NCBI GenBank assembly: GCA_002269645.1 | Contig: NIVC01000190.1 | Location: 62,001-126,000 of the forward strand | From: Macrostomum lignano | Taxonomy: Eukaryota | Direction of reading: 5' to 3' | DNA: 64,000 nt | Shown here: positions 1,105 through 64,000 of the stretch, piece by piece | How the letters are laid out: every line of letters starts with the position of its first letter | Numbering within the stretch: position 1 is the stretch's first letter | The notes under the pieces: model-generated | The model's database searches: none | Seen by the model: only the letters and a program-made list of their open reading frames with translations | Told to the model about the DNA's origin: nothing | Translations under genes and position numbers: made by a program

Positions 1105-1145
<41 letters not shown>

Positions 1146-21800: not shown

Positions 21801-24369
21801 GATGAGAGCCAAGACACTAAAGCAGGGAGACAACCAGAGGAGCCAGCAGATGGACCAAGGACAGAGCAGGATGGACCGGGCAGGTAGGGCAGAGCTCAAA
21901 ACTCCAAGATTGGAAAGCGACCACCGGAATTTCGGCCAGATCTCATATACAACGTAGGACGCTTACAAGATTTGTGTGTCGTCTTGAGCGCATATCGCTA
22001 TTAACAGTAGTTTTGCCACTGTTTACGAATGCAATAGTACTTTCCCCCCAATGACCAAGAGTATGCAACGCCCCTGACTCTCGTGACAGAGTGCCCAGGT
22101 TTGATTCCTTGCTCGGCCACATTAATTTGAGGCTCGTCCAAAAGAAAACTGGCCTGGTGCTTGGGGCGATTCTTGCCCAGCACATGGGGGTAATACCTTG
22201 AGGAGTAGAGTATGTCGTATCTGTGTGCACGTGCGTGCTCAAGTGTCAGCAAATGGGCTTGACTGCATGGCCGTCTGACGGACATTGTCGCCTTGATTGA
22301 AGTTGTCCAAAGCCTTCCGCCATAGACTAAATAAAAGATAATGTACAGCGCACTTCAATTGGAACGATTTACAGGAAGTTTCAGTCGCTGCCGGTCCGTT
22401 TACCATAACCGCAGCGCGTGACGAGGTCATTGACTTCTCCGTTCCTCTGTTTGAAGAATCGAACGCTATTTTATTGCCGAGGCCGGCTCCAGAGTCTAAA
22501 CTATGGAGAGTGTTCTCACCTTTCACTATGAGCGTCTGGCTTTCTATTGTTGCAGCTCTGTTTGTCACCACCTTTGCCACTTGGGTCCTGGCCTATTTTT
22601 CACCGTTTACAGCCTACAACTTGAATCTTGAGTTTGCCATAGCTGATGAGGTCTGGCTTCAAGAGTACCTGTGGAGTGCGATAGGCAGCTTTCTGCAACA
22701 GGGCCAAGACTTCTATCCGTTTGCAATGTCGTCTAGAACAGCCATGGCGTTCTGGTGGCTGCTTTCCGTGATTATTTGTGGCGCATTCAACGGTGAGACG
22801 GCTTGATCAGTTATTACAAAAAGACTTTGCAGTAGTCAAACACAAATCGTTAGCTATAGCTTTACAGAGCTAGTTTGAACCACAAACTCACCAATAGGCA
22901 CTTTTATGCCCAAAGCGATGGCGTGTGCAGAGTTTTAAATGTAGGGGGAGCGTAACACAAAGGGGCCAATATTTAGTGTCTTGGCCGGTAGGCGCCCCTG
23001 TCTCTTGGTGGGCGCCCCTACCACAACGATGTACCAAGTACGACTGACACGGAAATTTGAAGTGACACCAGCGTCCATTTGATCTGCGACAGCTTTAAAA
23101 GGAAAAAGAAAAAAATGTTTCCGTTGGAGAGCAGCCTCATTGAAAATTCTCTACTAGACAAAAGTGCAAAATAAAAAATGATCGTCTACCAAAACTTCAA
23201 TTCTGTTTTCAATCAGAACAAAATGTACTAAAAGAAAACGAAAAACGAACCGCAATGAATCTTCTTCGCGTCATTTCAGGCGATCTGACGGCCCACCTGA
23301 CGGTGACTGTGACGCACTATCCCATCAAGACCCTGGACGATTTGACAGGACAAACAGAAATCAGACCCTACGTAATTGCTGGTACAAGTCTGCACACTCT
23401 GCTTTTGAACGCGGAATCTGGTGTCTACAAGAAAATCACCGAGAGTATGGTTGAATTGGGGCCTTACGATGACTGTCCGACAGATGTGAGCGACTCGATC
23501 ATTGTATTGCATTGTTTGACGCTTGTATCGGTGTAGCAGGAACAGGGGGCACGGTAAAGTAATTCCGAGCACAATATAAACGAGATCTCACTTTCATGAG
23601 CTCAAATTGACTTGAATTCCAGCTTACTGTCGTCAATTACTCAGCCATCGTAAATAACGTACGAAGCAGTTTGTCATACTAATCTGGTAATTTTCGAACC
23701 CATTTTTAGCCGCCAAATCCTAACCAGGCCTGCCTCACGGACTACACTTACCTGCTAAACATAGCCAGAAAGAATTGTACTCAATTTTACCTGGCCGAAG
23801 AATTGTTTTTAACTGCGCCAATTGCTTTGATGCTACCGGATGACGCGTTTTATGCGGAACTGTTCAACTTCCAGTGAGTTTCAATCTTCCTTAAAAAGTA
23901 GAGAGTCGGGAGCATAAACTCACTTTTTACTCCTTGCTGTTTCGATTCCTATTAGAAAATGGTTACGCGCAGAGAAAGGCGCAAATATTTTAGGACAAAA
24001 AATCCACTCAGTTGTATCGAGGAAAACATTGACATTCGCTAGATGAACCTAGGACTCTGCATAGGTGATCCTACTGTTCAGTAGTACCAAATAAAGAACA
24101 TGTTCCAAATTCTTTTTAACTCTGTTTGCAGCATGCAGAAACTGCACGAAACTGGCCAACTGCAGCGCTGGTTCCAGCTCTACTGGTCCAGCGACTCAGT
24201 CTGCTCTGTTGGCAGCTCTGCCGAAACCGACGCTATAAGCCTGGAGAGCGCTGGTGGGTGCTTCATAGCGACTCTCTGCTTCTACGGCCTGGGACTGCTG
24301 ATTCTATTGTTAGAGCTTGTCTGGACTAAGCTGGCTAAGAGGCAGCCGCTGGATTGCTTCTTCTATTGA
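18861..24369 (+). CDS. Ionotropic glutamate receptor / IR-family subunit, paralog 1 (ATD+LBD+TMD, 840 aa, 12 exons)
   Basis: Exons 18861-19104, 19252-19395, 19477-19590, 19726-20111, 20234-20386, 20471-20725, 20811-20917, 21001-21094, 22375-22792, 23280-23485, 23710-23873, 24132-24369; all GT-AG and phase-compatible, total 2523 nt. Motifs: signal peptide; DGNWG..FNGCVGELQRG; GPFTITAARDEVIDFSVP (S1 Arg); M1; WSAIGSFLQQG pore loop; M3 WWLLSVIICGAFNGDLTAHLTV; M4 GGCFIATL. Confidence 0.92.
21211..21933 (-). mobile_element. 723-bp retroposon insertion (SINE or 5'-truncated LINE) with (CAA)n tail and 15-bp TSD, in iGluR-1 intron 8
   Basis: GGCCAGATCTCATAT is duplicated at 21196-21210 and 21934-21948. 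A (GTT)5 run at the left end reads as a CAA tail on the minus strand. GC-rich body with no clear RT motif. Confidence 0.82.
22043..22340 (+). mobile_element. Possible degenerate tRNA-derived SINE
   Basis: B-box-like GGTTTGATTCC at 22098-22108, preceded by a weak A-box-like TGACCAAGAG and tRNA-like spacing; about 220-bp body ending in an A-rich stretch. No TSD found. Confidence 0.35.
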
Positions 24370-26072
24370 TTAAAATTTCAAATATTAGGCTACGTTTGGA
24401 CAACAAATCCAACATTAGATAATAACTTTGCACTGCGTAGTTAGAACGTGCTTTAACATCAACATTTTCAGTTTACTGGAAGCAGCTTCTATTATGCTTA
24501 TTAAATTTGCACTTGAACAGGGTGTTGATTGCATATTTCATGATATCATTAGAATTATTTTGACTATTAAGTGCACCACGAAACAGAAAAAATTTTTCTA
24601 CATAACGGTTGAGAAGTTGAAATCTAAGGGAAGTTGCATTCTGGATTTTATCATATCTTCGAATAATATTGCTAGAACTTCCATTGTGTCTCAATCTTCT
24701 CGAGTCAGTAGGTAAAATACTTCATCCTCAACAGTAAGATTTTTTAATTTGAAACTTTGTCAGAGATTTCTTGCTCAAATTCATCACGGGAAGCACTATA
24801 AAAGTACCAACTATAGTCGAACAGAAGTTAACTTCACTTTCTACTACCCCCCCCCCCCAAATAACGTGCAAGATGCTGCGCATTTTACCATCATCGGAAG
24901 GCCAAATATCGGTCAAGTGTTTACTGTCCCGAAATTCTAGTTTTAAGATCGAAGGATATGTAAAGCCTCATCCACCCACTAAGTCAGTGTCAGGGATACG
25001 AGCTACATCTTCTCTGACCAGCTTCACAGTTTTGTGGACGCTTTGCGAAAGCATGCTTGCCATGTTTTTCTCTTAGTCCATGTATAATCCTACTGTCTGA
25101 ATCTGATAGCAGGTTGAAAAAATTATCAATAATCATTGAATTATAAGTCACTGACGGAAAAAATTACCTCAGAAGAACTTCTAGAGAACCATAACATGGA
25201 CAACTAGAGTAGAAGGACGCTACACTCGGCTTTCGTGGAAATCGGGCTGGAGGCCAAATTTTCGCGTAAATACACTAGTGTGACGTTGTCAGTTTAAGGT
25301 GGTCCCGAAAAGGGCCGTTGGACTCCTGTTTCCCCATAGTCATTCAACCCTTCAGTTTCACCGTTTCAACTAAACTTTTCCATTTGTTTATTGCGACGTT
25401 TACTTGTAGTAGTGCCCAACGATTTTGTGGCAATTTCTAATTCACTGTATATTTTGCTATCCTCTCTCTCGACCGTATAAAATTGGCACGATCGATAATT
25501 TTAAGTTCTCTCGCCAGCCAATGAAAACCACTCGTGCTTCGCGCTACCCCCCTCTGCGCTCCTTTATTAAACCCCCCGCCTGGCGGCGGCACTCCTCACT
25601 CCCGTCCTTATCTGTGCTTCTCTCTTCCTCCCGGCCTGTCCTCGGCCTTGTTTTCCTTCTCTCTGTCTGGGCCAGCCTGTTTACACTGCCTGCCACTGTC
25701 TGCCACGGCTAACGCCAATCTCACCACTACGCATCTGCCACTGTTGTACTCATCGCCGTTACTCACCACGTTGCATCGTCTTGCATCACTCGCCTACCAC
25801 TCAACTACAATCTCTAACTCACCTTCAAGTCAAAACCATTGTTGCAGCCGCCAGTGCCCCAAAGCGCAATAAGTTCTATATTGATATTAACCGCATCGAA
25901 TATTGATCTCAACAATAATAACCAACTACGGCCAGTTTCCGGCCTTGTATGCCAAGTGCTCCGCTACACAAATCCGCTATCAAGACTTGACTCGATTCAT
26001 TTGGGACTAAAACGGCCCTTTTAAGGGTCACGGACAACATCAAAGGCCGAACTGCAGGGCTGTAGCCGGGAA

Positions 26073-27803
26073 ATGCGTGCACTCTGGGCTCAATTCAAGG
26101 ACCTTGAAGTAGTCGAGGGCCTATTGTACTTAGCCAAATCTTCCAAAGCCAAGACTGCCAGCAGGCGCCTGGTGGTGCCTGAGACCGCAGACGTCAGTCA
26201 TCTGGTCCTTCAGTATCATGGCCAGTTGAACCATTGCGGTATCACCAAGACGATGGCCGCCCTGAAGGCGCGCTTCGTTATCTCCGACTTAGATACTATA
26301 GTCAAGGGGGTCCTGGCCGAATGCACCGTTTGCGCTAAGACTAAGAAGTCAAAGCGTAAGCTCAAGGCCCCTATGCAACCAGAACTGTCCGGCTACCCGA
26401 ACCAGGTTGTCCACGTGGACCACGCAGGCCCATTCGAAGAGTGTGAGGGGTACAAGTACCTGCTGGTTATGATTGACCGGTTCACCGGGTTTGTCGAAGT
26501 AGTTCCTGTTCCCGACGTCAGCGCAGAGACCACTGCCACAACCATCCTGACTGAATGGGTTGCCAGGTATGGGGTGATGGAGCAGTTGGTGTCTGATAAC
26601 GGAACTGCCTTCATCAATAGTACCATGATAGAATTAACTAGGCTCCTACAGATTGACATGGGTCGGATCACAGCCCGTCGCCCTCAGGCTAACGGTAAAG
26701 CTGAGAGGATGATCCAGACGGTGAAAGCCCAGATTAGAGCCATCTGTCTTGAGAGACAATGCGACTGGACCCTTGCCAGCCGCCTGGCCGCCATGTCAAT
26801 CCGTGCCACAGTCGCCGAATCCACCGGATTTACTCCAGCCAAACTTTTCTTCGGGCGTGAGTTCGAACTGCCGCTCGACCTCTGTCACAATCCACCGCCA
26901 AATGAGCACTACCAGCCGGAAAAGTACGCCCACCAGTTGCACCGCACGCTAGTCGAAACCTCTGCCCTAGCCCGCCGCACTAGGGGTAAGGCCCAGGAAA
27001 GGCAGAAAAGGTATTACGACCGCCGCGCCCTCCGCGCTGAGTTCCACGAGGGAGAATTAGTCTGGGTCTTGAACCCGAATCACAAGGGCATAGAACCCGC
27101 TGTGTGGTTGGGGCCATACCGAGTAGTACAGCGCTGCTCCGAGCGGACTTACCGTTTAGTCCCCGAGTATGGTCTCCTAAACCCAGCAGATCGGGTGCCA
27201 AATCCGCGCCATAACATTTACAACATTGACCGTCTCAAACCGTGTATCAGACAGCCCACTTACCAAGACGTAGTTGACCGGTATGGTGAGGCCACCCATG
27301 CCAGGTCTCCAGCACCTAGTGTGAACCCGCCAAACGGACCCACGAGCGAGCTTAGCCTCGTCACCATTCCCCAGCCTCCCTCTGCCCGGCCAGAGAGCCC
27401 ACGCAGAACGCCAGGGCCAAATCCACCACCGCCAGCTTCAGGCGCCTTTGAGGAGGGGGCGGGAGCTGCTGCGGGAGAAGGCCAACCATTCGCCGAAGCT
27501 GGCGATGCTGTAGCCATTGAGGGACAGCCACAGCCAGACACTGACACTGACAGCACAGACACTGACACCAGCCATAGCCAAGACAGCTCAGAATCGCTGT
27601 ACACGGCCTCCTTGGGGGACCCCTCCTCCGAGCAAATAGAACCACCTGAGATTGCTGCGAATCCAGTCGCTGCGCAAGCAGCTGAACCACCAGCCCCGGC
27701 TGACGTACCCAGATCCAGGTACGGACGCCCCATCCGCCCGCCTGTCAGGTACCGGACCTGTCAGGTGTCCGACCTGCTCCAGCAGTGGGGAAGCAGACAC
27801 TAG
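26073..27803 (+). CDS. Gypsy integrase ORF (576 aa from the first ATG; remnant of pol)
   Basis: HHCC zinc domain (YHGQLNHCG...ECTVC), DDE core (VHVDHAGP, LVSDNGTAF, NGKAERM), SH3-like WLGPYRV and a Pro/acidic tail; uninterrupted. Confidence 0.93.
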   Translation: MRALWAQFKDLEVVEGLLYLAKSSKAKTASRRLVVPETADVSHLVLQYHGQLNHCGITKTMAALKARFVISDLDTIVKGVLAECTVCAKTKKSKRKLKAPMQPELSGYPNQVVHVDHAGPFEECEGYKYLLVMIDRFTGFVEVVPVPDVSAETTATTILTEWVARYGVMEQLVSDNGTAFINSTMIELTRLLQIDMGRITARRPQANGKAERMIQTVKAQIRAICLERQCDWTLASRLAAMSIRATVAESTGFTPAKLFFGREFELPLDLCHNPPPNEHYQPEKYAHQLHRTLVETSALARRTRGKAQERQKRYYDRRALRAEFHEGELVWVLNPNHKGIEPAVWLGPYRVVQRCSERTYRLVPEYGLLNPADRVPNPRHNIYNIDRLKPCIRQPTYQDVVDRYGEATHARSPAPSVNPPNGPTSELSLVTIPQPPSARPESPRRTPGPNPPPPASGAFEEGAGAAAGEGQPFAEAGDAVAIEGQPQPDTDTDSTDTDTSHSQDSSESLYTASLGDPSSEQIEPPEIAANPVAAQAAEPPAPADVPRSRYGRPIRPPVRYRTCQVSDLLQQWGSRH

Positions 27804-27815
27804 CCGCCAGTTTTT

Positions 27816-27960
27816 CACGCCCCGGGCAAGGCGTAAAACTACCTCCTGTGGCACCTGCCGGCCACAGGTCACTGCGGCACCTGTAGACCGCAAGCTCACG
27901 CCCCGGGCAAGGCGTAAAACTACCTCCTGTGGCACCTGCCGGCCACAGGTCACTGCGGCA
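27816..27960 (+). repeat. Two identical 64-bp direct repeats (81-bp period) after the integrase stop
   Basis: Copies at 27816-27879 and 27897-27960. Confidence 0.93.
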
Positions 27961-28714
27961 TTTGCCAGCCACAGACCACAAAACACAAGCCACAAGCCAA
28001 ACTAGTTAATTCAAAAGTAAACTAACTTAAAATTAATTCATAAAGCACTTTATGGTCAAAATATAATTATGACATGAATATTATAAATATAAAAGTTGTC
28101 AAAAATATTCTGTAGTAGTTCTCTGCCTGCATCGGCGTTGCCATAGTCTATAAGGTACACAAGGGCGCGCATGCCCCTGTAAGCCTAATATGACGACAAT
28201 ATGAATAATATATATAAATAGTGATGGCATGAATAGTATAAACATTATAGCAATGGCAAAAATAATTAAAATAATTGATAGCTTAGAATAATCCTATTGC
28301 ACCCGTTCGGTGTTGCCGAAGTCGATGAAATGTATAAGTGCGTCATCTCTGACGTTAATACCTCAAAACCATGTGATGTGCAATATACGGTTGGTAATTA
28401 AGCATAACTACTGGCGACGAATAAAACTCATAAATAACTCAAAAAGAAAATAAAAACTGAAAAAAAGCCATTGAAAACTCGGAAAAAATGCATATAGGAA
28501 TATAGCTAGCTCAGTTCGCTACTCAGCCTATTGACGAGTGCAGCGTAACGCTGCGCAACTGGCTGATCAGGTCAGCGTCGTTTACTTCAAAAATCAGCTG
28601 CAGTTTATCATTAAATTTAGCAAATTTCGTGGGTGTCCGAATAATCATAGGTATATATATCTTGTGTGGGGTAAAAGTAAGCACTATGCACATACACACA
28701 CACCGCACGCACGC

Positions 28715-29035
28715 TCTCTCTGCCTTTGGCGCGTAGCGCCATCCTCTGCCTTGGCGCGTTGCGCCGTTCCTGCCTGGCGCGTAGCGCCATCCTCTGCCTT
28801 GGCGCGTGGCGCCGTTCTCTGCCTTGGCGCGTGGCGCCGTTCTCTGCCTGGCGCGCTGCGCCGTTCCCGCCTGGCGCGTGGCGCCGTTCTCTGCCGTGGC
28901 GCGTGGCGCCGTTTCCTGCCTTGGCGCGCTGCGCCGTTCTTTGCCTTGGCGCGCTGCGCCGTCTCCGCCTTGGGCGCTCCTGCGCCGGTTTCCTTCCGCC
29001 TTGGCGCGCCGCGCCGTGTCCCGCCGCCCTTGACG
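28715..29035. repeat. GC-rich degenerate tandem array (TGGCGCGTGGCGCCGTTCTCTGCCT-like) inside the Gypsy 3' region
   Basis: Recurrent GGCGCG/GCGCCG units; generates overlapping low-complexity ORFs on both strands. Confidence 0.85.
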
Positions 29036-32000
29036 CTTGTCGTCGTTGCCCGCAGTTGTCCGGACTGTGTCTCTGTTTCGTGCCTCTGCTCTGCATCCTT
29101 TGCCTCATCCATCTGTCATCCTTGTTCTGTGTTTTGCCTCACCCATCGTATCACTTCTGCGCGTCCTTTGTCGTTTTGTGTTCGCGCGCGCCGCGCGCTC
29201 CGTCGTGCACCACTTTCCGTAACCACTGTCATATTTTTGTTCTGTTTTTGTAACACCACCATGTTGTATTGCTCGTGCTCACCGCGTTCTACTGCCCTGT
29301 AATATTCTGCTCCCGTAATAGTCTGTAGCCTTTGGAACTTTGTAATTTTGTCCGGTAATCATATACTCCTTCATACTACTCAAGCTCCCTGTAATTCGCT
29401 CTGCTATAATTTCATACGCTGCGGTCACGTTGTGTTTTTCTTGCCGTCACCCCGCGTGTTGGTTTTCTTTTTGCGCGACCCTATCCTTTTTCGGAAGGGA
29501 GGCGGGTGTGACGTTGTCAGTTTAAGGTGGTCCCGAAAAGGGCCGTTGGACTCCTGTTTCCCCATAGTCATTCAACCCTTCAGTTTCACCGTTTCAACTA
29601 AACTTTTCCATTTGTTTATTGCGACGTTTACTTGTAGTAGTGCCCAACGATTTTGTGGCAATTTCTAATTCACTGTATATTTTGCTATCCTCTCTCTCGA
29701 CCGTAAAAAATTGGCACGATCGATAATTTTAAGTTCTCTCGCCAGCCAATGAAAACCACTCGTGCTTCGCGCTACCCCCCTCTGCGCTCCTTTATTAAAC
29801 CCCCCGCCTGGCGGCGGCACTCCTCACTCCCGTCCTTATCTGTGCTTCTCTCTTCCTCCCGGCCTGTCCTCGGCCTTGTTTTCCTTCTCTCTGTCTGGGC
29901 CAGCCTGTTTACACTGCCTGCCACTGTCTGCCACGGCTAACGCCAATCTCACCACTACGCATCTGCCACTGTTGTGCTCATCGCCGTTACTCACCACGTT
30001 GCATCGTCTTGCATCACTAGCCTACCACTCAACTACAATCTCTAACTCACCTTCAAGTCAAAACCATTGTTGCAGCCGCCAGTGCCCCAAAGCGCAATAA
30101 GTTCTATATTGATATTAACCGCATCGAATATTGATCTCAACAATAATAACCAACTACGGCCAGTTTCCGGCCTTGTATGCCAAGTGCTCCGCTACACAAA
30201 TCCGCTATCAAGACTTGACTCGATTCATTTGGGACTAAAACGGCCCTTTTAAGGGTCACGGACAACATCAAATAACGTGACACTAGCGAGATAGAAGAAT
30301 ATATTATTTTTCATGCGAAATAGGCAGCTAAATTTGATTCCAAGAAGCAGTGAAGTTCTTATTTTGATATAAGTTGAAAGAGTTATTACTTTGTTGAATT
30401 TTATATGGCTTTCATCGCGAAAGTGTAGCATTCTATTTTTTCATTTACATTATAACTATAGGCCTAATTATAAGGTATACTCTACTCTAGTAGGCCTGTG
30501 GCCTATCTAGTAGTATAGTATTCCCTACTATTATTAATAGGCTCTGCATGTCATTGTCTGCAGGACAATGACCAAGCCAGTCTATACATCCTATCTGTAG
30601 CTAGTAGATCTTAAATCTCATGCCTATAGCCTATGATCAATATAGCTACTTAGTATATTACAAGAGTTGCAATCTAGAGTGTTATGGATATTCATTCATT
30701 CAAGCATACAAACCCAACCTTAGAGATTTTGTATATTTAGATAGGGTAGCTTTAATTTTTGTTTACTTTGATTTGAAATGATTGTTTTATAATAGAAAAC
30801 TACCCACTGGTTCACACGACCTCGAAACGACATCGAATCAAGCAGTATACCTCGATTTGACTATATTCTGGTTTTTCCAACAATTTGTTTATATAAACCA
30901 TCCCCGTGGTGTCGAATGTATTAAAAAACATAGATTTTTTTAAAATTAAAATGATAAAGTGTGACGTAATGACATCGTATCCATGCCGTAAAGTAGGACC
31001 TCGTTTGTACGATAATTAACTTCGATAAGAAGTTGATAGTTCAAATTTTTGACAACAAAAAACATGTATTAAAATGAAAGTACCACTGTTAATTCAAAGA
31101 TTTTTATAATCATTTTTTACCAGTTATGTTTTAGCATTAACGAACAATAAAGAGTATTTTTTTCAATTGTTATAGTACGTTTATTAAATATGGACAGACT
31201 AGTCTATCTGCGGTTTTAAATTATTTTCCAGACCTACGACGGCCCTCTATACACGTGCGTGCGGACGTGTCAGTATAGAGTATAGTCTACAAATGATTAT
31301 CTTTGCTGCGCTAGAATTGTTATTGAAAGATAAAGTTAAAAAGTAATATACACTGCGTTTCAAATAAGCTTGTCTAATATAGTTCATAATAAACTTTCAT
31401 TCTTTATTTTTCATTTTTTTTAAAATATTGAAAAAAATGAATGTTTCAAAAACATTCATTTTTGAATTCATTGCTTATATTCAAATTCATTTATATTATA
31501 GTTATACTTAATTTTATGTTCATAATTTGAGTAAGATACTGTGTCTAACTCTATATTTTAATAAAAGTTTAATTTCCTCTTACTGGAGACTCCAAGCCTA
31601 GTAGATTCTGAAAGCATGGGCAGCAGGCAGTGGAGCTTGTGACACCGGGGGCACATACCCACCTCCCCTAGAAAATAAGTCCATATGGAAATTTTAGTGC
31701 TTTTTCTTATTTTAGCCTTTAATTAGCAGCTTATAAAGGTACATGTGGCCCACTTTCTTTGTGCCCAATGCCCCCCTTAAATATTAGGCTCCACTGCCCC
31801 TGTCTGAATGTTAAAAAATTCAAAGTTGTGTAATATAAATTTTAATTTTTGTCAAGATTAATAAATATACTGCTTATTTAAACTTCTATTTTTAGTGAGT
31901 GAACATTTACTTTATTGCTTAACATAGTTTTTTAAAAGAATTTTCATAGAGCAAAACAAGTTTGTTTATGTAAAATATATATTAAATGAAAGTAGTGCAT

Positions 32001-33276: not shown

Positions 33277-34296
33277 AAAATAAGAAATAAAGGCCTAGCT
33301 AAAATGTGTTATACAATTCAATGACAATGAGTTGATCTATTTTAAGATGTGCATAGTTACTTATCCCATTTATCTAATTAATTTTAATAAAATTTTAACA
33401 GAGGCAGAAGGCTTTTTATTTCAATGGATAGAATGGCAGCAAAGAGTTTATGCTTCTTTGTGGGTATATTTATATTTACACAAACTGCGCAAGATTAAGG
33501 GGCCTAGAGAGATTTGAAAAAAGGTGGCATGGCATAATAAGCTATGCTAACCCCCCAGCTTAGTGAGCTGGCTAGCCTGGTGCATAACCAGTTTTACAAC
33601 ATGCCAATTTTAGTGAGCAACAAAGACTAGGCAAAGCCTCTATATGGAATCAAGATAATAGAATAAGATAAGATAATAGAAAGTTAAAACCCATGCTGCC
33701 ATTGTCAATAACCTGAATACAAAAAATGCTTTAGTTTTATAACACAATATATTGACCTAAATATTTTAATGAGAAAGTTTTAAATAATAATTTATTGTAA
33801 GATATATGACAATAATATAATAATACCTTAAAAACCAGGTTGTTTCATTTCAATGGCCATGGCATAATTTCAACTCATATTAAACATGATTACATGAAAT
33901 TGATTGTTAATACACATTATTTGAGCCTGATGTGAAAAAGTGAGATCCCCAAAATGCCAAAACAAGCTGAAATTTAATTCATTGAATTCAACTATGCTGT
34001 TTAGCTTGCAATATTTTTCCTTTATCACTTGGGTATTATAAAAAGCAGACATATAGTTTAACAAATATTTAATGTTTTAAACAAAAACCTTTTTTGTTCT
34101 ATTTAGCTATCTAAAATTGGAATAAGGTGTAAAAAATAAGCTTTTGAGCTTTTATTAGAACGAATATTGGTAAGATAATCTTAATAAAAATCTAGCTAAG
34201 AGAATCTTAGTACTCTTGGAAAATCATTTACTTAAATAATTTTAGTATAAAATTTTGTCATACCCTCAAAACAATCATTTTTTTAACTTTTCAGAA

Positions 34297-42299: not shown

Positions 42300-44220
42300 T
42301 AAATCAAATTAATCAATAAATGACAATACTTATTTATTATTAGAACTAGCTTTTGCCTTATATGTTTTTAGTACACAATGTAGTCAATTATTTTAATTTG
42401 CAGTCTCTTTCAATATGAGAAATCTAGGACTAGCACTAGATAGAATTTATAGAATTGGCCCTTGTTTACTACTTTGCGATGGTCTGAATTGAAACTGGCT
42501 ATGAGTATAGTACAATGTCAGTATATATTATGTATAGCTGGACAATTGGTGCCTATCATATACTGTACTCAAATATTAATAAGCTTCTGCAAGTGCCACT
42601 ATGGTCAAAACTCACTATGCAGTATTGCAGTATACCAAATTGTTCTTTTTAGGTATAGTATAATAGTTTTGGCTAGCTGTTATCACAAATAAACAATAAT
42701 AATATATTTTATTACTGAAATTAGCGATTATATAGTCCGCCAGTAAAAAATTCAAGCATACAAGATAATAGGAGACTAAAGAAATGCACTAAATGAACGA
42801 AAGGAGTAGCATACTAGTATAGTATTTGCGTGTAACCACAGATGAAGTTGCAGAGAGTTCAAAGTTGTGGTCTCACTGTCCTGTGTTGGCTAAAGGAGCT
42901 GTGTTCAAAAGAGCTGATGTTCCAAGCGAGCGCAAATTAGTGAAAATGGAAGTGTGCAAATTAAACTGGTCAATAGCTTCAACACTTGATCGCGTAAAAC
43001 AAAGCTTGCTAGCTGTTCTTCTTGCAAATTGCGAGGGCGCAGAATTCCCGTCTAAAAGAGTTTTTTCTTCAAAGTGGACAGTCATCATACTAGTTGATAA
43101 GTATGCTGATATTTTTGCGAAGCTTGCGTTCAAAATTATTGTCGGAAAGTGACGGCTCGGGTGCAGTGTAAATTCCGGTCGGAATATGGAGCCTCATATT
43201 CCGGTATGTTTCCGGGGTGCTTCCGAGAAGCAAAGAAAGCCAGGAAATACTTTGTGTAGTTTTTGGATGTCATTGGAGCACATTTTTCATCGTTTTTTTG
43301 CTTGCAAATCTAGTTCCACCAGATTCCGATTGCCCTGCTAAAATCCGGCCAGATTCCGATGTCAATCCGATAACCCGTTTTTAGTGGGTGCCACTGCATC
43401 CTTCTGTCTAAAGTATGTAGGCATATGCACTTAAGGATGGTCCAGCTGCAACGTATAATTCACCAAAAATCTCAGCAAGACGCCTGCGCCAAGCAGATTC
43501 GCATGGACTTTTCCAAAAGGAGTTTTCGCAAAGTATGAAGATGTCAACAGGCCGTGTTGCACTGGTTCCGGCAGCTGGAGGAAAAACTGGAGGAAGGCTG
43601 AGTTGGAGAAGCTGTATGAGCACTGCCAGGGGTCGATTGATATTGGGGGGACACTGTGTTGTTGATAGATACGGTTTTGTTCATCTGCGGTTGTAAGTTT
43701 GTCTGTTTTCACATCACTCAGTGACATTTCTTATGACACACCCGAAGTGTATCGGTATTTTGCGTCTTTGTTTCGTGTTTTACGGTTTAAATTCTCACAA
43801 AAGTCTTATGCATTATTGGCTTGTGTAAACATTGGGACTTTTAATTAATGTTCTTGAAGAATGAGCTCCAGTTTGACTTTAACTTCTTTATTTTTTATTT
43901 GCACTTTGGATATTATAAGTATAAAAAGATACTTAACTGCTTGTAATCTTCAAGTTTTGTTCATATTTTTAGATAATGAACCGCCGTTATTTTAAATTAC
44001 TAGTCCACCCAATCTGCATGCTGCCCTATACTTTCTTTTTCTATCTAGTTAGCTTGTATCTACTATGGGGAGCTAGAATACTGCCTAGAACTTGTTCGCC
44101 TGCCAAATTCCTTTACCGAGGATCGCTTACTAAAAGTAAAATTATTGAACAAATGCTAAAATTTTGATAATTTTCTCAAAACTAATTAAATAGCCAGTCC
44201 ATTTGTTTAAAATTGCAGAA

Positions 44221-46129
44221 ATGTCGCAAGCAGGCGAGTCAACTGCATTTATGCTGTTTTTTCGGACTTTTAATCAATTCCGCGTAATTGCTGGTGATTT
44301 CATAGATTTGCCGCACCGCAATTGGACAGAGGAAGACTGGATGGACACTGGGTACGCAGAAGTCGCAGTTGACTTGCAGGACGAAAATGGATCAAGTACA
44401 GGCATTGTAGTCCAAGTGGCTACATCTATTACCGATCTAAATGAGACATTTAAAAAGGCAAAGGATCTTCGCTACAAAAAAAACTTCTCGTTGGCCAAAA
44501 TCCTGACGTTCTTTCGCCGTTTTAAGTCCGGTCGGGATCACGTGCCGCCTATGAGAAACCTAACTACCGAAGATGAGCAAACCGATGCAGATTTAGATGC
44601 TGCAGCAGTACGAGTGAAGGCTTTACCTGCACAGCATCAACAACAGCAAGAGATTCAGCTGCCATCAATGCCTGCCAAAAATGCACCATTAACTACACGT
44701 ACAATTTCGAATGAGTCAGCGGTTGAGACTACTGTTGTTTCGACAGGCGTGTCTACGAATTTGGTTAGTCATGCATCAGCATCGTTTGCCCCTCAGCCCC
44801 GCGGTGGTGGAAGGTTTCAGTCAAATCTACGACCGTACATTCAGTCGCTGCAGGCGCAGGGTATTGACCCCTTCTCTCCGGACGGTCATACTCATCTGCT
44901 GCTCCTTGTCCTTACGGAAGTGACCAAACTAAAACAAACGATTGCAGAAATCAGACCTGCTGCGTCAATGGCCAACACCAACACGGCAATTGATTTGGGC
45001 CTTCCTATCAAGGACCGTGAAGAATACGCCGCTTTCTCGAACCGCGTCAAGGAGAAAAATTTTCGACAAAGTATTGTGAGTCTGACCGCATGTTTATTTT
45101 TCTGAGTGCATATTATACAGACAATCATTTATGGCATGTTTGGATTGAGTAATTTCCCTATCCTGTATACTTCGCATATCGAATGTCATGGTCAACAATT
45201 TCAAAGTCAAAAGCTAAGACTTAGTGGATATTTTTGATTTAATCAAATAACTATAATATTTGAAGCAGGTGCTTCTGATTGCATTTTTACCTAAGTCTGA
45301 TGTCATTGACATCATTGTAGGTTGCTTATCTCCGCCGGCTGGGCGGCCAGTCAGTTGACAGAATGATTACGTCAATGGTGGATGCACTACTGGCAACTGA
45401 TTTTCAACGCCAGTTTAATTTGACTGGGAAGGATTACAGCCAGCAGGGGCGGCCGAGATCGAAGATATCGTTTCGTGAATCTATTGAGCCCATTATCAGC
45501 GGTAAGTCACATACTCTGTGAAGCGTAGTTTTGCAGGAGAATCATAATCCGATTTATTATTTAGTAGTGGCTATTGTTTTTAAAACAAGAGTAAATTTAC
45601 TAAGTTTTCTTAATTCCTACATAAAATATAGGAGAATAGAATTAATTACTGTAGAGAACCAAAATTTATCGTAAAGGGAAGGAAATTAGATCGTATACCA
45701 ATGCAGTGCGTTATCAGACTAAATACTATACAGTATGCTGCAGTTGTTGTTTAGAAACTTTCATAACTTCAGGGTCATATCAGTTATTTTCAGCTATTAT
45801 GCCTATCTACTTACGCAATATAGCTTTATTCAGATGTTAGCTCTAATATATTGGCCTATTGATGGTATTTTAAGTATGCAAATTTAATCTTTTTTCCAGA
45901 AGCAATGGCCACGTGCAAGCCGCCAGTCACGTCGGCTGAGGTCACCCGGCGCATTAGTCGCTATCTGCAGGATGTTGGCCAGCGTTGTAAAGCCCTAACG
46001 CGCTTAAACCCTCAGCCTGACGGCAATGAGGAAAGCCAAACCGAGGGACGCGATTCTGCCGACTGCGACAGCGAGGATGAAGATTTTGAACCACTTCACA
46101 AGAGAGTGGCAAGGCAAAGGGAGACCTAA
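44221..46129 (+). CDS. Element A partner protein (421 aa, 3 exons), C-terminal DUF4806/BEN-like domain
   Basis: Exons 44221-45075, 45321-45501, 45900-46129, phase-consistent, 1266 nt. LPIKDREEY..LRRLGGQSVDRMITSMVDALLATDFQRQFNLTG..KISF..EVTRRISRYL. Confidence 0.8.
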
Positions 46130-48639: not shown

Positions 48640-50860
48640 GCACTCAATTTAGACTTATCCTCGCCTCGTTGAAAAGGTTCGCCAAATCGCTACGCCCGTA
48701 AAGCAAGCAAGAGGTATCGCAGTTTCTGGGTCTTGTCAACTTTTTCGGCCGACTAATCCCAAATTTCACCGCTAAAACACGCGCGTTAAACAATCTTCGC
48801 AAGGCTAGCACAGCGTTTGTCTGGGATTCCAGTTGCTCTGAGGAATTTGAAAATCTGAAGCGTGAGATTAGCTCCGCTCCTGTCATAAGGCCGTACAGTT
48901 TGGAGAAACCAGTCACTTTGACTACCGATGCCTCTAAAGGTGCCGTGGCTGGCGTACTCACGCAGGAAGGACATCCCATCATCTATGTTTCGAGAACGTT
49001 ATCAAAAGCTGAGGAAAACTACTCAAACATTGAGCGCGAGGCGCTTGCAGTTTTCTGGGCAATCAATCGCCTAAGACAATACCTCCTAGGAAGAAATTTT
49101 ACTATCCAGACAGATCATCAGCCGCTACTTCGCCTCTTTGGTGGCGAGGTGCCCACGCACACCTCGGCTAGAATTGGTCGCTGGGCGCTTGCGCTTATGC
49201 AGTATGACTTCCAAATTCAATATGTTAGTGGTCCTCAAATTCCCCATGCCGACGCACTATCCCGCCTGCGTTTCACTAAAGCGTCGCCCGATCCAAAGGA
49301 AATTTCTGATGCGATCAACTGCGTGGTATTCGAAACCTCAACCATTGACTCTAAGCGTATACTGGCGGAGATGGATTCTGACCCTCTTGTTCAGAAGATA
49401 ATTCAGCGCGTGCGCTCTGGAGACTGGTCGAAGTGCTCTCAGGCGGAATCCCCATACAAAAAAGTCGCGGATCGCCTCACTATGGAAACTGGCCTGCTAT
49501 TCAAGCAGAGACGCATCTTTATTCCGCCTCGCCTACGTCTCGAAGCCTTTAACACTATTCACGACACGCACTTGGGCGCGCAAGCCTCTTACAATCTACT
49601 AGCCTCATCGTGTTGGTGGCCTGGGATGCGGCTTGATGTTGAACAATTTGTGCGTCGATGTGCTGGATGCAATCAGCTACGACCGCGACTGCTCAAAGAA
49701 AGAGACACTTGGCCAGCATCTACTTTTCCTTTCCAGCGGATCCACATCGATTGGGCGTATGTAAAGGACATTGGAAATATCCTAATTGTCGTCGATACGT
49801 TTTCAGGATGGATAGAAGCTTTTCCGTCGCGTGACAGATCAGGAGATAGCGTTGTTCGGTCCCTAATTACCGTATTTTCTCGATTTGGTGTACCCGAACT
49901 ACTTGTGTCGGACAACGCACCTGAGTTTACTGGTGATCCCCTATCCTCATTCCTACGCGCCAATTGGAGTCACCTCCGTACTACCCTACCCTCAGGCAAA
50001 TGGATCGGCGGAGCGGGCAGTTCGTACTGTCAAGACGGCGTTGAGAGCGTGGACCGAGCGCGTCACCCACATGGAGTTCCTCCGCTTCCTTCAGAAGATA
50101 CTTTTCCACCATCGCAATTCGTCTATGTCCCGAGGTAAATGCCCGGCGGAATTGGTCTTTGGCAGACGATTGCGCGCGATTGACGCTTTCGTTCAGGGGA
50201 GACGGTCCACTACAAACCACATGAATCGTCGTCAGGCACCCCCGCGACCTTTGTGATGACTGCAGGCAGGAACACGGCGTGGGTTCTCGCTGACAGTCGG
50301 TTGCAGTTAGCTAGCACTAATCAGCTGGCGCCTCAAAACCAGCCTTCAGACGCCAATGACGATGATGAAGATGCTGTTCCCACATCCAATGCAGACGTGC
50401 CGCCCGATGACCAACAGCAGGCCCAACTGAGACGAAGTTTGCGAGACCGTCGACCTCCCGAGAGATTCACCCCATAGCATTCTCATGAGTTGCAGTGAAC
50501 AATAACTACCTTGCCTGTTAACAATGAACTGAATAAGATATGTTTTCCCACTCTAAAAGTTACTCATGAAATTTTATACTTTATTGATATAACCCATACA
50601 TATAGGTCATGGTTGTAAGCAGCTTCTGAAGAAGGGGCATGTTGTGCATTGAGAGAATGCCTCCTATCAACGCGCGCATTGATGTACTACTATTAATTCT
50701 CTTACTGACTCTCTCGTTCCCTTCAAGTTTCGCTTTTTGTCTATGTCCTATCTCTCTACAGGAATTCGTATATTTTAGAGCACCGCTCTCTTGTTTGTTT
50801 CCTAAAAGCATGTTTGAGACTTAAGGCAATAGAAAACAATAAAGTGCATCAGCATTAACG
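48640..50860 (+). mobile_element. 5'-truncated, frameshifted Gypsy element (RT thumb-RNase H-integrase, PPT, probable 3' LTR)
   Basis: FLGLVNFFGRLIPNF (connection); TTDAS, EREALAV, TDHQPL, ADALSR (RNase H); HDTHLG..CAGC, HIDWA, LVSDNAPEF. Frameshift near 49960-49990 before NGSAERAV. PPT GAAGAAGGGG at 50628-50637, then TGTTGTG.. from 50640 with AATAAA near 50840. No 5' LTR found. Confidence 0.85.
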
Positions 50861-52617: not shown

Positions 52618-52682
52618 AGACCTTGCATGTGAATCCAAATACAATCAACTCTACGAGCTACTAATCAACTAACTCCAAAGTA

Positions 52683-55600
52683 ATGGCAGTTGCACGCGTG
52701 TTAGCAATAGTCACTGCCTTCTCAGTTTATCTAGGCAGCTCATCCGCCCTGGACCTGAGAGTTGGCGTGATCACGGAGGCCGGAAACTTGAACAGCTCGC
52801 TCATCGACGTCGCCTTCGCCAGACGGGTCAACTACAACTGGAGAGTGCTGCAGGGCCACACACTCTCATATGTGCATGTCAATGTGAGCTCGTGCAGCTC
52901 ACACCAGGCTGTCAGGACTGGTGAGTTGAAGCATTTGCTACGCGACTCAATCGCTGCTCTGCTCAACCTGCTCGATCAATGCACACAATTGAAGCATGAA
53001 TTGCACGAATGCAAGTGTGAGTGCGAGCTGTGAGACTGTGCATGCGTCTGTGTGTCTCGCTCCGCAGTGTGCTCGGAGAGCGGCCTGTCAGGTCTGATTG
53101 GCGTCGGCAGCTGCTCTCTGCTGGATGAAGTGAGCTCACTGAGCAAGTCTCTGCAGCTGCCGCTGATCGCCCTGCCGACTGAAATGTGCGACTCTGCTCG
53201 GCTGAGCAAAGGTATGCTGCAGCGTGTCTTCTAAAGTTCTTTTGACAATTTTATTCAGTATTAATAAGCTGGCCAATCTAAACTTGCCTAAAAATAGCAG
53301 GATACACTGTGGTAGCCAGTCACAGCTCTCACGACATCATGCGCGCAGCGGCAAGCATATTCAAAGACGAATCGGAACTCAACAAAGTCGCCATGCTTTA
53401 CGATAAAAAACAAGGTTTGAATGTTTTGCAAAATCTTTATTTTATGTACTTTTTCCGGTATTCGGGTCAGGTTTCATACGGTAGCACTTTTTCTAGCTAT
53501 AAATATTAACATAATACGAACCATAAAATTGATTCAGATTCACTGATGCTGCAGAACCTGCAGTCCAGTCTCTCCTCTGCCGGTGTGAGCAGTCTCACAT
53601 TCCGAGTGGACGACTCTGTCAACGCTTCTGTTACTCCTGACCTGGTGCACCACCTCAAGCGGCTGGTCAAGAAGAAAGTGTTCAAGCTGCTGCTGCTCGC
53701 CTCTCCTCGCAATGCTCTCAGTGTGCTCAGGCTCGCCAGGGAAGCTGCAGTGATGCAGCAGAACTACTTCTGGCTCGTGCTCGACACCGGACTGTCCAAG
53801 GCCGATGTGCTCAGCGTGACGCCGGCGAACGCGAACGTCGCTCTGCTGAGAGGCAGCGTGTTCACCGAGTGCACAGCAGCAGTGATGGATGTGTTTCCTC
53901 AGTGCCAGACGGACTGGCTTCGGGTGAGCGTTTCATGTGTGCTGCTTGATGGCTGCAGGGATTCATCATGCAGCTCCGCACGTGTGCAATGCATGCCTCT
54001 GTCGCACTCGATCTCGCACTCGATCGTCGCATTCGACAGACTCTGGACGCTCGCTTCGTAGACGCCGTAGAAGCCATGGCCAAGGCGCTCAACGACTCGC
54101 TGCTGGATCCGGGATTCTCTCCCGGCAACGCCTCGTGTGCGCCACTGCGCCACTGGACATCGGGCTCGGCTGTGCTCAACAGACTCATGAGTGTGAGTGA
54201 GCTCACTAGCTGGCAAGCATTGACAAGCATTATTAGTTTCGAGCTGGTCTCTCCCCAATCCCTACTCAATGTGCAGATCAGCGACTTTGACACTCAGCGA
54301 GGCCTGATCTCGTTCAACAGCTCGACCAGACACTTCAGCTCGCAACGAGTCGAAGTAGTCGCGTCCTACAATGAGCTGTGGTCGTCTCCGGTCTCGATGC
54401 TGAGGTCGGCTCAGTTCGATGCATCGAGCGGAGCTCTGAGCAAGCTGTTCCACTACAAGGGAGTCAGCTTGGCATTCCCGAACACCTTCATGGGATTCAA
54501 GAACCAGACCTTGGTTATGTGTACCCCTAGAGTTAGTTACTTTGACAAATCTCTTTTGTTGTTCTACATGTCTTTTGGAAATGCATTTCTCTCAACCGCA
54601 GCTTTCTCTCAAAATTATCTCAACATTCAGATCAAATTAATGAGTTTTCTTCTAACTTTTCAGACCTCTCCGATGACAGACTTTGTTGCTGAGTTCCCAA
54701 ACAAAACTGTGATTATTCGAGGAATGACTCGAGATGTGCTGGACATTTTGGCTCAGAAAATGGATTTTAGGTAACCTTTTTATAGTCGTCCTTAATTACC
54801 TGCCTTATTAAAGTATAAGTTGGATGGGAGTTTTACCTGAAAATGCAGATACATCACTAAGGCACCTGACGACGGTAACTGGGGTGCGCCCCAGGCAGGC
54901 AAACCCTACTTCTCAGGATGTGTCGGAGAGCTTCAGCGTGGAGTGCGTGGGCTGTCATGTTTTCTCAAGATTTTTTTTGGTGAAGAATGATATCAGTTAT
55001 TTATACTTGCTTATATCTGATTTCCCCGCGTCCAGATCTCACACCTGGGAGCTGGCCCCTTCACCAAGACTTCAATTCGCGATTCCGTTATCGACTTCTC
55101 AACGCCGCTGTTCGACCAATCCACCGCAGTCATGGTGCCGAAACCGCCACCAGACACAAAGATGTGGAACATTTTTACTCCGTTGAGTCCGTCTGTGTGG
55201 TACCTCCTGCTAGGCACTTTGGCATGCGCCTCAGTTGTCATGTGGGTCCTTGCTTACTACTCTCCATTCTCGGCTTACAACTTGGGCCTTGAGTACGCAG
55301 TTTCTGATGAGATCTGGCTGCATGAGTACATTTGGAGCGCTATCGGGAGCTTCCTGCAGCAGGGCCAGGACTTCTACCCGTTTGCGATGTCGCCAAGGAC
55401 TGTTATGGCATTTTGGTGGATGTTTACCTTGATCATATTTGGAGCTTTTACCGGTGCGTCTGCTAGTGCTTTTATGAGCTAATGTATAATTAATTTCTAG
55501 GGTAATAAGCTACTACCATTCCTAATTATCATTACAGGTGACTTGACTGCTCACCTGACTGTGACTGTCACGGACTATCCGATCAAAACCCTGACAGACC

Positions 55601-56961
55601 TGGTCTCTCAAACCGCTGTTAAGCCCTACGTTCCAACCGGCACGAACCATTACACCTTGCTCACTACTGCCGAGTCAGGCATCTACAAGCAAATCGCTGA
55701 CGCAATGGTGGTCATGCCAGCTGGAGAATACTGTCCGTATAATGTGAGTCTTGAATTGTCGTGTTTCGGGTTGTTGACACTAAGCAAATTAAACGTTCCA
55801 AGTCACTAAAGGAAGTTCTAAAACAAAACTTTTCTCAGCCACCGAAAAATGACGCAGCCTGCATAAATGACTACACCTTTCTGTTGGGCCAAGCAATCAG
55901 GCACTGCTCCTTGTACTACATGCTCTCGGAGACTTTCAATCCATCTACGGTGGCGCTTATGTACTCGGAAGACGCTTTCTATGCTCAAATGTTCGACTAC
56001 AAGTAAAATTTTAGCTAACGACCTATGCTACCCAGTTATTTGCTTCGGTTGCTCAAAAGATTGCCATTGGAGTTGACAAACTAACTATTAGTTTACTATA
56101 AGTTTGCTACTATTGTAACAATTGTAACATTGTAACAAATGGCTACGCTAGACCACTACATGTAGGCTACACTATACCACTGGGCTAAGCGAGTCCGCTG
56201 GGCTACGCTAGACCACTAGGCTACGCTTGACCACTAGGCTACGCTAGACCACTAGGCTACGCTAGACCACTAGGCTACCCTAAACCACTAGGCTAAGCTA
56301 GGCCACTAGGCTACGCTAGACCGCTGGGCTACGCTAAACCACTAGGCTAAGCTAGGCCACTAGGCTACGCTAGACCGCTGGGCTACGCTAAACCACTAGG
56401 CTACGCTAAACCACTAGGCTACGCTAGACCACTAGGCTACGCTAGATCACTAGGCTACGCTAGACCACTAGGCTACCCTAGACCACTAGGCTACGCTAGA
56501 CCACTAGGCTACGCTAGACCACTAGGCTACGCTAGACCACTAGGCTACGCTAGACCACTAGGCTAAGCTAGACCACTAGGCTACGCTAGACCACTAGGCT
56601 ACGCTAGACCGCTAGGCTACGCTTGACCACTAGGCTACGCTAGACCACTAGGCTACGCTAGGCTAAAAATAACCACGCTAAATTTGTCCACAATCAACGC
56701 TCGCCCATCAGCTTGCAGAAGATGCACGAGTCTGGACTGATGCAGAGACTCTTCGATTTCTACTGGTCCAGAGAGAACTTCACCGACTGCGGCAAAGGAG
56801 ACGGCAGATCCACGGAGGCCGACGGCATCAGTTTGGAAGGCGTAAGCGGCTGCCTGCTGATCACGGGCTGCCTGTACACCATCGGCCTGCTCATCCTGTT
56901 GATCGAGCTCGTCTGGACTAAGCTGGGACGGAAGCGACCGTTGGATTGCATCATCTATTAA
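52683..56961 (+). CDS. Ionotropic glutamate receptor / IR-family subunit, paralog 2 (12 exons)
   Basis: Exons 52683-52920, 53068-53211, 53301-53414, 53538-53923, 54040-54192, 54277-54531, 54664-54770, 54849-54942, 55036-55453, 55538-55743, 55839-56002, 56712-56961. Internal exon lengths are identical to paralog 1 (144, 114, 386, 153, 255, 107, 94, 418, 206, 164). Motifs GPFTKTSIRDSVIDFSTP, WSAIGSFLQQG, WWMFTLIIFGAFTGDLTAHLTV. Confidence 0.93.
56141..56663. repeat. 18-bp minisatellite (GGCTACGCTAGACCACTA), about 28 copies, in iGluR-2 intron 11
   Basis: Direct tandem copies. Confidence 0.96.

Positions 56962-58688: not shown

Positions 58689-64000
<5,312 letters not shown>

Follow-up and report, generated by a model that had tools for sequence, protein, structure and literature searches.

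Divergent ionotropic glutamate receptor-like genes with a non-canonical M3 gate in the flatworm Macrostomum lignano

Mutations in the M3 gate motif SYTANLAAF, the most conserved element of ionotropic glutamate receptors (iGluRs), lead to constitutive opening and disease. In a 64,000-nucleotide stretch of the genome of the free-living flatworm Macrostomum lignano (assembly GCA_002269645.1, contig NIVC01000190.1, positions 62,001 to 126,000 of the forward strand; hereafter designated the window, with positions counted from its first letter), two iGluR genes, designated P1 and P2, carry AFNGDLTAH and AFTGDLTAH, respectively, in place of this motif, which raises the question of what kind of receptor is built around such a gate. 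We found that P1 and P2 belong to a Macrostomum-specific expansion within a flatworm-only clade of divergent non-NMDA (AKDF/ionotropic receptor (IR)-type) receptors. With fair confidence, we favour the view that their products are amino-acid-gated cation-channel subunits, non-NMDA iGluR-like, with modified M3 gating.

Gene structure and the M3 gate

By tblastn, the window contains exactly two iGluR genes, both on the + strand, with the following limits and exons.

18861-24369, + strand: P1, 12 exons, 834 amino acids, intact, stop included
18861-19104, 19252-19395, 19477-19590, 19726-20111, 20234-20386, 20471-20725, + strand: P1 exons 1-6
20811-20917, 21001-21094, 22375-22792, 23280-23485, 23728-23873, 24132-24369, + strand: P1 exons 7-12
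52683-56961, + strand: P2, 12 exons, 842 amino acids, intact, stop included
52683-52920, 53068-53211, 53301-53414, 53538-53923, 54040-54192, 54277-54531, + strand: P2 exons 1-6
54664-54770, 54849-54942, 55036-55453, 55538-55743, 55839-56002, 56712-56961, + strand: P2 exons 7-12

The exons were modelled from GT-AG junctions that hold the frame open, with two introns in the amino-terminal domain (ATD) placed by means of the annotated M. lignano homologues P0001, P0003, and P0004; every intron in the two models is GT-AG, and neither model has an internal stop. An earlier reading of the locus made from the sequence only (hereafter the sequence-only reading) had assigned the pair to 22375-56002, a span that opens with P1 exon 9 and closes with P2 exon 11. 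Over amino acids 495-842, P2 matches UniProt entry A0A1I8H6T5 (M. lignano) with 99.4% identity, and P1 is 94% identical to A0A1I8H5G6; both are unnamed 'PBPe domain-containing' entries, and the genes were thus already in databases as predictions. Both products have a hydrophobic signal peptide and the M1, M3, and M4 segments, and contain the Pfam domains ANF_receptor, Lig_chan-Glu_bd, and Lig_chan (E 1e-13 to 1e-24); the resemblance is not due to chance. The match to PF01094 (ANF_receptor), above the curated cut-off at E 8e-18 in P2 and 3e-13 in P1, identifies an LIVBP-type ATD and upholds the earlier description of the genes as ATD-bearing, and the matches to PF10613 (E 1e-13 to 1e-15) and PF00060 (E ~1e-24), both over their curated cut-offs, identify the ligand-binding domain (LBD) and pore of an iGluR. 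The closest solved structures by sequence (HMMER) are GluA2 and GluD1 (E ~1e-35), and the ATD weakly matches the solved ATDs of GluD1 and GluD2 only (E ~1e-3).

The cytoplasmic tail is ~11 residues long. Its last codons (24346-24366 in P1, 56938-56958 in P2) encode a terminal heptapeptide, PLDC(I/F/V)(I/F/V)Y-stop, which is common to all full-length members of the GDLTAH clade seen and could be a sorting or scaffold-binding motif.

The gate and the pore loop are located as follows.

22783-22792 and 23280-23296, + strand: P1 M3 gate, AFNG-DLTAH, interrupted by a 487-bp phase-1 intron
55444-55453 and 55538-55554, + strand: P2 M3 gate, AFTG-DLTAH, interrupted by an 84-bp phase-1 intron
22672-22710, + strand: P1 pore loop WSAIGSFLQQGQD, Gln at the Q/R site, Asp at +4
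55333-55371, + strand: P2 pore loop WSAIGSFLQQGQD, identical to P1

In both genes, a phase-1 GT-AG intron within the Gly codon divides the sequence that encodes the gate nonapeptide into two separate stretches. Apart from being intron-split in this way, the gate strings quoted in the sequence-only reading are all present on the + strand, as are the quoted S1 strings and the pore string WSAIGSFLQQG (22672-22704 in P1, 55333-55365 in P2), and its observation of a non-canonical gate is confirmed. Only two of the nine residues in P1 and three in P2 agree with SYTANLAAF. HMMER pairs 'ftliifgaftgdltahltv' of P2 with 'ftliiissytanlaafltv' of GluA2, and MAFFT with labelled references also puts both nonapeptides at the SYTANLAAF positions. 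Relative to the canonical motif, A7 is changed to Thr, A4 to Gly, N5 to Asp, F9 to His, Y2 to Phe, and, in P1, T3 to Asn, with A8 (Lurcher) kept. In the alignment, the equivalent of M629, the downstream gate residue in GluA2 structures, is Thr. The QQGxD pore and the LBD Cys pair are kept in both genes.

This altered gate is conserved. Among seven Macrostomum paralogues that are 36-66% identical across the LBD and transmembrane domain (TMD) region, the pore loop and M3 gate form the best-conserved stretch (majority-residue fraction 0.90 / 0.85 versus a mean of 0.61). Between P1 and P2, the proportion of synonymous differences (pS) in the LBD and TMD is saturated at 0.76, in comparison with a proportion of nonsynonymous differences (pN) of 0.27, indicating that the duplication is old and that both copies are under purifying selection. 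Exhaustive searching by HMMER, with the M. lignano paralogues P0001 and P0004 combined into a profile, gave 5062 homologues, for the best 150 of which the gate, pore, and pocket motifs were tabulated; among these 150, GDLTAH gates are confined to M. lignano paralogues and the GSFLQQGQD pore to M. lignano proteins. Gly4, Asp5, and Thr7 are found singly in some related protostome receptors, and their combination with His9 is confined to the Macrostomum clade. Judged by these alignments, x(Y/F)(T/N)GDLTAH is a derived, fixed, and constrained state. Because purifying selection acts on the derived gate, we predict a change in gating and not its loss; the 'possibly altered gating' of the sequence-only reading is therefore reasonable, the derived gate lying in the best-conserved part of such diverged paralogues.

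The same data bear on the suspicion that one or both copies are decaying pseudogenes in which the odd gate reflects degeneration. The initial P1 model contained an in-frame TAG at 20405-20407, P1 intron 8 has a 1.28-kb insertion, and young retroelements flank P1. However, the TAG codon sits in an intron that is spliced out in the annotated M. lignano homologues, so that P1 as a pseudogene on this ground was rejected, and with both open reading frames (ORFs) intact, pN far under pS, and the gate among the best-conserved segments, such decay is scarcely credible.

P1 and P2 might also be receptors that are not opened by agonist in the conventional manner, being constitutively open or leaky, ligand-modulated or ligand-blocked (cf. 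Trichoplax AKDF1), or non-ionotropic with signalling via the ATD (cf. vertebrate delta receptors). A7 is the proposed agonist-controlled gate residue, as A8 is the Lurcher site, and A7 substitutions, which extend across the whole flatworm clade, strongly stabilize open states in NMDA receptors (PMC3434102); moreover, natural iGluRs with constitutive leak exist (PMC12226733), and conversion keeps the ATD near-invariant among the paralogues, as if the ATD itself bore a shared function. On the other hand, the Lurcher alanine is retained, the alpha-amino-acid contacts and the pore Gln and Asp are invariant under strong constraint, as expected if binding is coupled to permeation, and the Trichoplax leak is ascribed to loss of D705, which is kept in P1 and P2. 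We consider an unconventional opening of this kind unlikely, while according it some weight.

The ligand pocket and a proposed mechanism

The pocket residues were located as follows, in the numbering of GluA2.

22393-22422, + strand: P1 S1 strand GPFTITAARD, equivalents of P478, T480, and R485 kept
55054-55083, + strand: P2 S1 strand GPFTKTSIRD, equivalents of P478, T480, and R485 kept
23378-23392, + strand: P1 alpha-F AGTSL, G653 kept, S654T, T655S
55636-55650, + strand: P2 alpha-F TGTNH, G653 kept, S654T, T655N
23734-23745, + strand: P1 beta10/alpha-I LTDY, L704T, E705D
55863-55874, + strand: P2 beta10/alpha-I INDY, L704N, E705D
20865-20882, + strand: P1 SGMTLS, Met at the lid position Y450
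54718-54735, + strand: P2 RGMTRD, Met at the lid position Y450

The S1 strings quoted earlier, TAARDE and TSIRDS, lie at 22408-22425 (P1) and 55069-55086 (P2) on the + strand, and HMMER pairs 'gpftktsirdsvidfs' of P2 with 'apltitlvreevidfs' of GluA2. MAFFT with labelled references reproduced the hand alignment of the sequence-only reading, in which position 655 is Ser or Asn, position 705 is Asp, and the S1 Arg is kept. Thus, both genes combine Arg485 and Thr480 with an acidic 705, which at the sequence level denote amino-acid binding, and the seven Macrostomum paralogues show no variation in the ligand-contact Arg, Thr, Gly-Thr, and Asp. The sequence-only reading took this R/x/D pattern for a sign of variant IRs that bind ligands other than glutamate; this part does not stand, because Arg485 with an acidic 705 is the mark of an alpha-amino-acid ligand (PMC8437780; PMC12226733).

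As to the identity of the amino acid, Gly653/Thr655 is typical of glutamate binders, and Ser653 with a non-polar 655 of glycine binders (PMC8437780). In one functionally tested alignment, Gly stands at the first alpha-F position in all glutamate-selective receptors, glutamate- and alanine-selective receptors both include cases of 'TD' at beta10/alpha-I, and the hinge Val of P1 and P2 is likewise found in glutamate-selective channels (PMC13648236). By this comparison, P1 (G-T-S, T-D) is close to the glutamate pattern, and P2 (G-T-N, N-D) has the state common among its spiralian relatives described below. That these canonical-gate relatives share the G-(S/T)-N...(T/S)-D pocket indicates that the pocket was inherited and is not a novelty of P1 and P2. 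Its residues fit amino-acid-binding receptors, not tuning IRs. Different ligands for P1 and P2, as proposed earlier, are possible, the two genes differing at positions 655 (Ser/Asn) and 704 (Thr/Asn).

Missed in the sequence-only reading was the lid aromatic, Y450, which is Met in both genes. Close Macrostomum relatives have Met there as well, and other members of the flatworm clade have Leu, Met, Phe, or His; Met for Tyr at the lid is the most unusual feature of the pocket.

In the mechanism that we propose, an alpha-amino acid would bind in the LBD clamshell as in an ordinary iGluR, held by Arg (alpha-carboxylate), Thr, and Asp-705 (alpha-amino). Glutamate would be fully compatible with P1, whereas P2 differs at two lower-lobe positions. 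Lobe closure would then pull M3 and open a cation pore whose Q/R site is Gln and whose +4 position is Asp, and the rebuilt, more polar M3 bundle crossing would alter gating, that is, the open-state stability, the conductance, or the sensitivity to divalent ions, protons, or Zn.

Relatives and class membership

A word-indexed protein search gave five matches, all from M. lignano, a result that reflects a prefilter limit and is not proof of isolation. Trees were constructed by neighbour-joining (Kimura distances, ~406 columns, 200 bootstraps) from 138-142 LBD-TMD sequences, including references from the supplements of Ramos-Vicente et al. 2018 (GluA, GluK, GluD2, GluF, GluE, GluN1, and plant GLR) and Croset et al. 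2010 (IR25a, IR8a, IR21a, and partial IR93a). P1 and P2 fell inside a Macrostomum clade with 100% bootstrap, which is nested, with 84-94%, in a clade made up of flatworms only (Spirometra, Fasciola, Paragonimus, and Cichlidogyrus). This placement, together with the restriction of GDLTAH to M. lignano among the best 150 matches, bears out the lineage-specific subfamily proposed in the sequence-only reading. All the gates of the flatworm clade are degenerate (AYQAELVAF, FWEADITAY, TWQADMTAF, TYQADMTAF, and YYTADMIGY), and position A7 is substituted in every member. The parasite members (Spirometra VZI22347, Fasciola THD27464, Paragonimus KAF5404236, and Cichlidogyrus KAL3310748), which are unannotated or mis-annotated, resemble P1 and P2 in that Asp/Glu at N5 and Thr/Val at A7 recur; in contrast, none has GDLTAH or GSFLQQGQD, and several lack pocket residues, such as Fasciola with 'AS' at 704/705.

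Clade-profile scores agreed with the trees. In bits, for P2/P1, they were as follows.

Spiralian clade: 296/312
Neodermatan flatworms: 268/274
IR93a-like: 236/249
NxY clade: 233/246
Delta-like: 208/210
IR25a/8a: 188/198
Kainate: 164/183
AMPA: 163/164
Epsilon references (three references only): 128/146
Phi references (amphioxus): 76/61
NMDA references: 74/67

The sequence-only reading had called for a phylogeny, and the one obtained sets the genes outside the AMPA, kainate, delta, Epsilon, NMDA, and IR25a/IR8a reference groups. They lie outside the AMPA and kainate clade (92%) and have TD or ND, not (L/M)E, at 704/705. They also lie outside the GluD2 clade (internal support 70-100%); GluD1 and GluD2 share Asp at 705 with them, and the GluD1 alignment spans the full LBD-TMD, but the delta gate is canonical SYTANLAAF. 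The GluN1 clade (100%) excludes them, and their Q/R/N site is Gln, not Asn. They stand apart from GluE1_Bbe, GluE3_Adi, and GluE4_Adi, Epsilon being reported as lost in protostomes (PMC6307864), and from GluF1_Bbe and GluF2_Bla, the two amphioxus sequences that represented Phi in the comparison. DanaIR25a, DanaIR8a, P0109, and P0146 form a separate clade (88%), which differs in its TPQGGGE pore and SVMAERE S1 motif.

Profiles and motifs point to a group of uncharacterised spiralian receptors as the nearest relatives, in which a canonical gate is combined with the pocket of P1 and P2. These AKDF-type iGluRs of molluscs, annelids, and nemerteans, auto-named 'delta-1-like' or 'kainate-like' (Pecten maximus XP_033737179, Haliotis XP_067672970 'delta-1-like', Lineus 'kainate 3-like', and Owenia), share with P1 and P2 the ATD-LBD-TMD layout and the GPFTIT..R, G-(S/T)-N, (T/S)-D pocket. 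They differ in the gate, (S/T)YTANLAAF, which keeps 8/9 of the canonical residues in comparison with 2-5/9 in the flatworm clade, and in the pore, xYMEQGG, where P1 and P2 have GSFLQQGQD. Their S1 motifs had no match in the Croset 2010 supplements, of which Dataset S1 was covered in truncated form. The spiralian clade may correspond to the molluscan Phi (GluF I-IV) / Zeta classes, which occur in all molluscs (Zeng et al. 2021; PMC8437780).

It could be asked, then, whether P1 and P2 are ordinary members of a named class, either molluscan Phi/Zeta or delta, with ordinary glutamate gating and neutral gate changes. The top profile is indeed that of the spiralian clade, with Pecten maximus and other molluscan proteins, in which animals Phi and Zeta are universal, and the P1 pocket (G-T-S / T-D) is near the glutamate pattern. 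Moreover, SYTANLAAF is weakly conserved in Lambda and some Phi iGluRs, a precedent for whole lineages relaxing the gate (PMC6307864). Lambda, however, is sponge-only; the amphioxus Phi references (61-76 bits) score lowest along with NMDA, and neither they nor GluD2 group with the genes. The spiralian relatives keep nearly the whole motif that the flatworm clade has mostly lost, and a motif so conserved after its change argues against neutrality. Ordinary class membership is thus, in our estimate, improbable.

A further alternative is that P1 and P2 are IR-like chemosensory tuning subunits, which would act with a co-receptor and sense chemicals in the environment that are not amino acids. One tree places the genes in a protostome-only assemblage consisting of the flatworm clade, the spiralian clade, an unlabelled 'NxY' clade, and IR93a-like proteins, with 92% support without the IR references. 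The IR93a-like profile is the third best, one molluscan member is auto-named 'ionotropic receptor 93a-like', and IR93a-like proteins also have Gly at gate position 4 (TYSGNLIAF). IRs, like P1 and P2, are protostome-specific divergent non-NMDA offshoots, and IR25a and IR8a keep the ATD and R/T/D. Lineage-specific tandem expansion is typical of chemoreceptors, and expression of an IR-like gene has been reported from Schistosoma miracidia (PMC5080760). However, the link to IR93a falls to 30% once the IR references are added. Tuning IRs are without an ATD and usually without at least one binding residue, the ATD occurring among IRs only in IR25a and IR8a (PMC2924276), whereas P1 and P2 have an ATD detectable by Pfam, keep all the R/T/D residues in invariant form, and lie outside the IR25a/IR8a clade, whose gates are canonical (SYTANLAAF and TFTANLAAF); only the restriction to protostomes fits tuning IRs. 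We therefore regard a tuning-IR role as unlikely.

In the course of these comparisons, molluscan receptors of ATD length (P0078, P0099, P0113, P0144, and P0147; also P0091) were seen to form a well-supported group whose gate, ATYSGNLIAFLTV, and pore, WYMYGALLTQGGE, agree with the IR93a signature of arthropods, TTYCGNLVAFLTF. The partial DanaIR93a groups with this molluscan ATYSGNLIAFLTV assemblage. An assignment of the group to IR25a was rejected, since IR25a and IR8a gates are canonical and the motif matches that of IR93a (TTYCGNLVAFLTF). As IR93a orthologues have been reported only from arthropods (Croset et al. 2010), such molluscan genes suggest that IR93a-like genes may be older.

Returning to the amino-acid-gated channel that we favour, several points weigh against it. 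With only two or three of nine canonical gate residues kept, normal agonist-gated opening may not be assumed, and Met at the lid could change or weaken ligand binding. Ligand gating and a channel role are proposed from sequence, and AlphaFold2 on the paralogue P0001 with a 7-sequence alignment gave an unusable model (mean pLDDT 34, pTM 0.25). As for the phylogeny, the trees are neighbour-joining only, the references were hand-transcribed from the supplements and some are partial, and the deep branches are unstable, as the drop in support for the protostome assemblage from 92% to 30% illustrates.

Concerted evolution of the ATD and its surroundings

Comparison of P1 with P2 in the ATD revealed two tracts of gene conversion and a hypervariable exon between them.

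P1 18918-19398 = P2 52734-53214, + strand: conversion tract A, mature ATD N-terminus, intron 1, and exon 2; 97.7% nucleotide identity
P1 19735-20704 = P2 53547-54510, + strand: conversion tract B, exon 4 into exon 6 with introns 4 and 5; 97.7% nucleotide identity
P1 19477-19590 and P2 53301-53414, + strand: exon 3, hypervariable ATD cassette of 38 amino acids

The tracts, in which pS is 0.033, reach from the signal-peptide cleavage region to the ATD/S1 boundary, which lies within exon 6. Exon 3 has diverged like the rest of the gene, with 47% amino acid identity, pS of 0.74, and unalignable flanking introns. Five further M. lignano paralogues show the same pattern, the identities being 88-97% in the ATD tracts, 29-50% in the exon-3 cassette, and 50-66% in the LBD/TMD. 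The pattern of an invariant ATD with a variable cassette is absent from P0004, P0005, and P0013; at the P0004 locus (L001), a single gene stands without a tandem partner and its ATD is not homogenised, indicating that neither the tandem arrangement nor ATD conversion extends to every member of the family. Concerted evolution here is domain-selective, acting on the assembly domain around a single hypervariable cassette. What the homogenisation means is speculative, co-assembly or a shared partner being the candidates. An extended view would have a receptor branch of the flatworms' own, with a polar M3 gate, and in Macrostomum a combinatorial repertoire in which at least seven paralogues share a conversion-held ATD and differ in the exon-3 cassette and in diverging LBDs; we put this forward tentatively, as doubtful. 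If it is true, the near-identical ATD would allow free co-assembly or a common partner, and domain-selective concerted evolution would organise a new receptor family with unconventional gating.

The two genes are separated by a transposon-rich spacer of ~28 kb. About 0.9 kb downstream of P1 lies a long terminal repeat (LTR) retrotransposon remnant (25278-29805), whose direct repeats (25278-25577 and 29506-29805, 300 nucleotides each) are 100% identical and thus point to a very recent insertion; its interior holds an integrase ORF (26073-27803, rve + Integrase_H2C2) together with a tandem array of 25-bp units rich in GC (28717-29025). A pol fragment of a second retroelement (48702-50474; RT_RNaseH, Integrase_H2C2, and rve) precedes P2 by ~2 kb and has the same orientation. 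Three ORFs in the spacer (34255-36261, + strand, 668 amino acids; 40389-42299, - strand, 636 amino acids; 44203-45105, + strand, 300 amino acids) gave no significant Pfam match, only sub-threshold ones to DUF1258 and to the transposase-associated DUF4218, and are probably transposon-derived or orphan genes. Within the genes, P1 intron 8 (21095-22374) measures 1280 bp in comparison with 93 bp in P2 and has long stop-free stretches in all three + frames without a Pfam match; the extra DNA is probably an inserted repeat. The last intron of P2 is 709 bp long, versus 258 bp in P1, because of an 18-bp minisatellite, TAGGCTACGCTAGACCAC, at 56163-56661 (27.7 copies, 90% matches). The left flank is repeat-dense from 985 to 10122, with (TGTC)n at 985-1297 and units of 20 bp (4166-4512), 15 bp (5975-6835), 36 bp (7924-8440), and 48 bp (9092-10096), and the right flank contains (CTAT)134 at 59389-59922 and (TAAC)127 at 62970-63479; these micro- and minisatellites give rise to long spurious ORFs.

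Lineage-specific iGluR offshoots with relaxed gates, such as IRs, Lambda, and some Phi, are already known. Literature searches, including SYTANLAAF with Platyhelminthes or IR25a, found no paper on the flatworm clade or the GDLTAH gate. Ramos-Vicente et al. 2018 sampled no flatworm and discarded sequences with <4 motif identities (PMC6307864), a filter by which P1 and P2 would have been excluded, and trees of the Lynagh laboratory include Schmidtea and speak only of 'uncharacterized AKDF' branches. The flatworm clade has thus been missed by the main phylogenies, in which no flatworms were sampled or low-motif sequences were filtered.

A lineage that replaced most of SYTANLAAF and then fixed the new version is a natural experiment on which residues are needed for agonist-controlled opening. 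M. lignano is amenable to RNA interference and transgenesis, which makes the gate question directly testable. The clade also includes genes of cestode, trematode, and monogenean parasites that are very unlike the receptors of their hosts. Finally, gene conversion restricted to the ATD provides a clean case for the separate evolution of the assembly and ligand domains of iGluRs.

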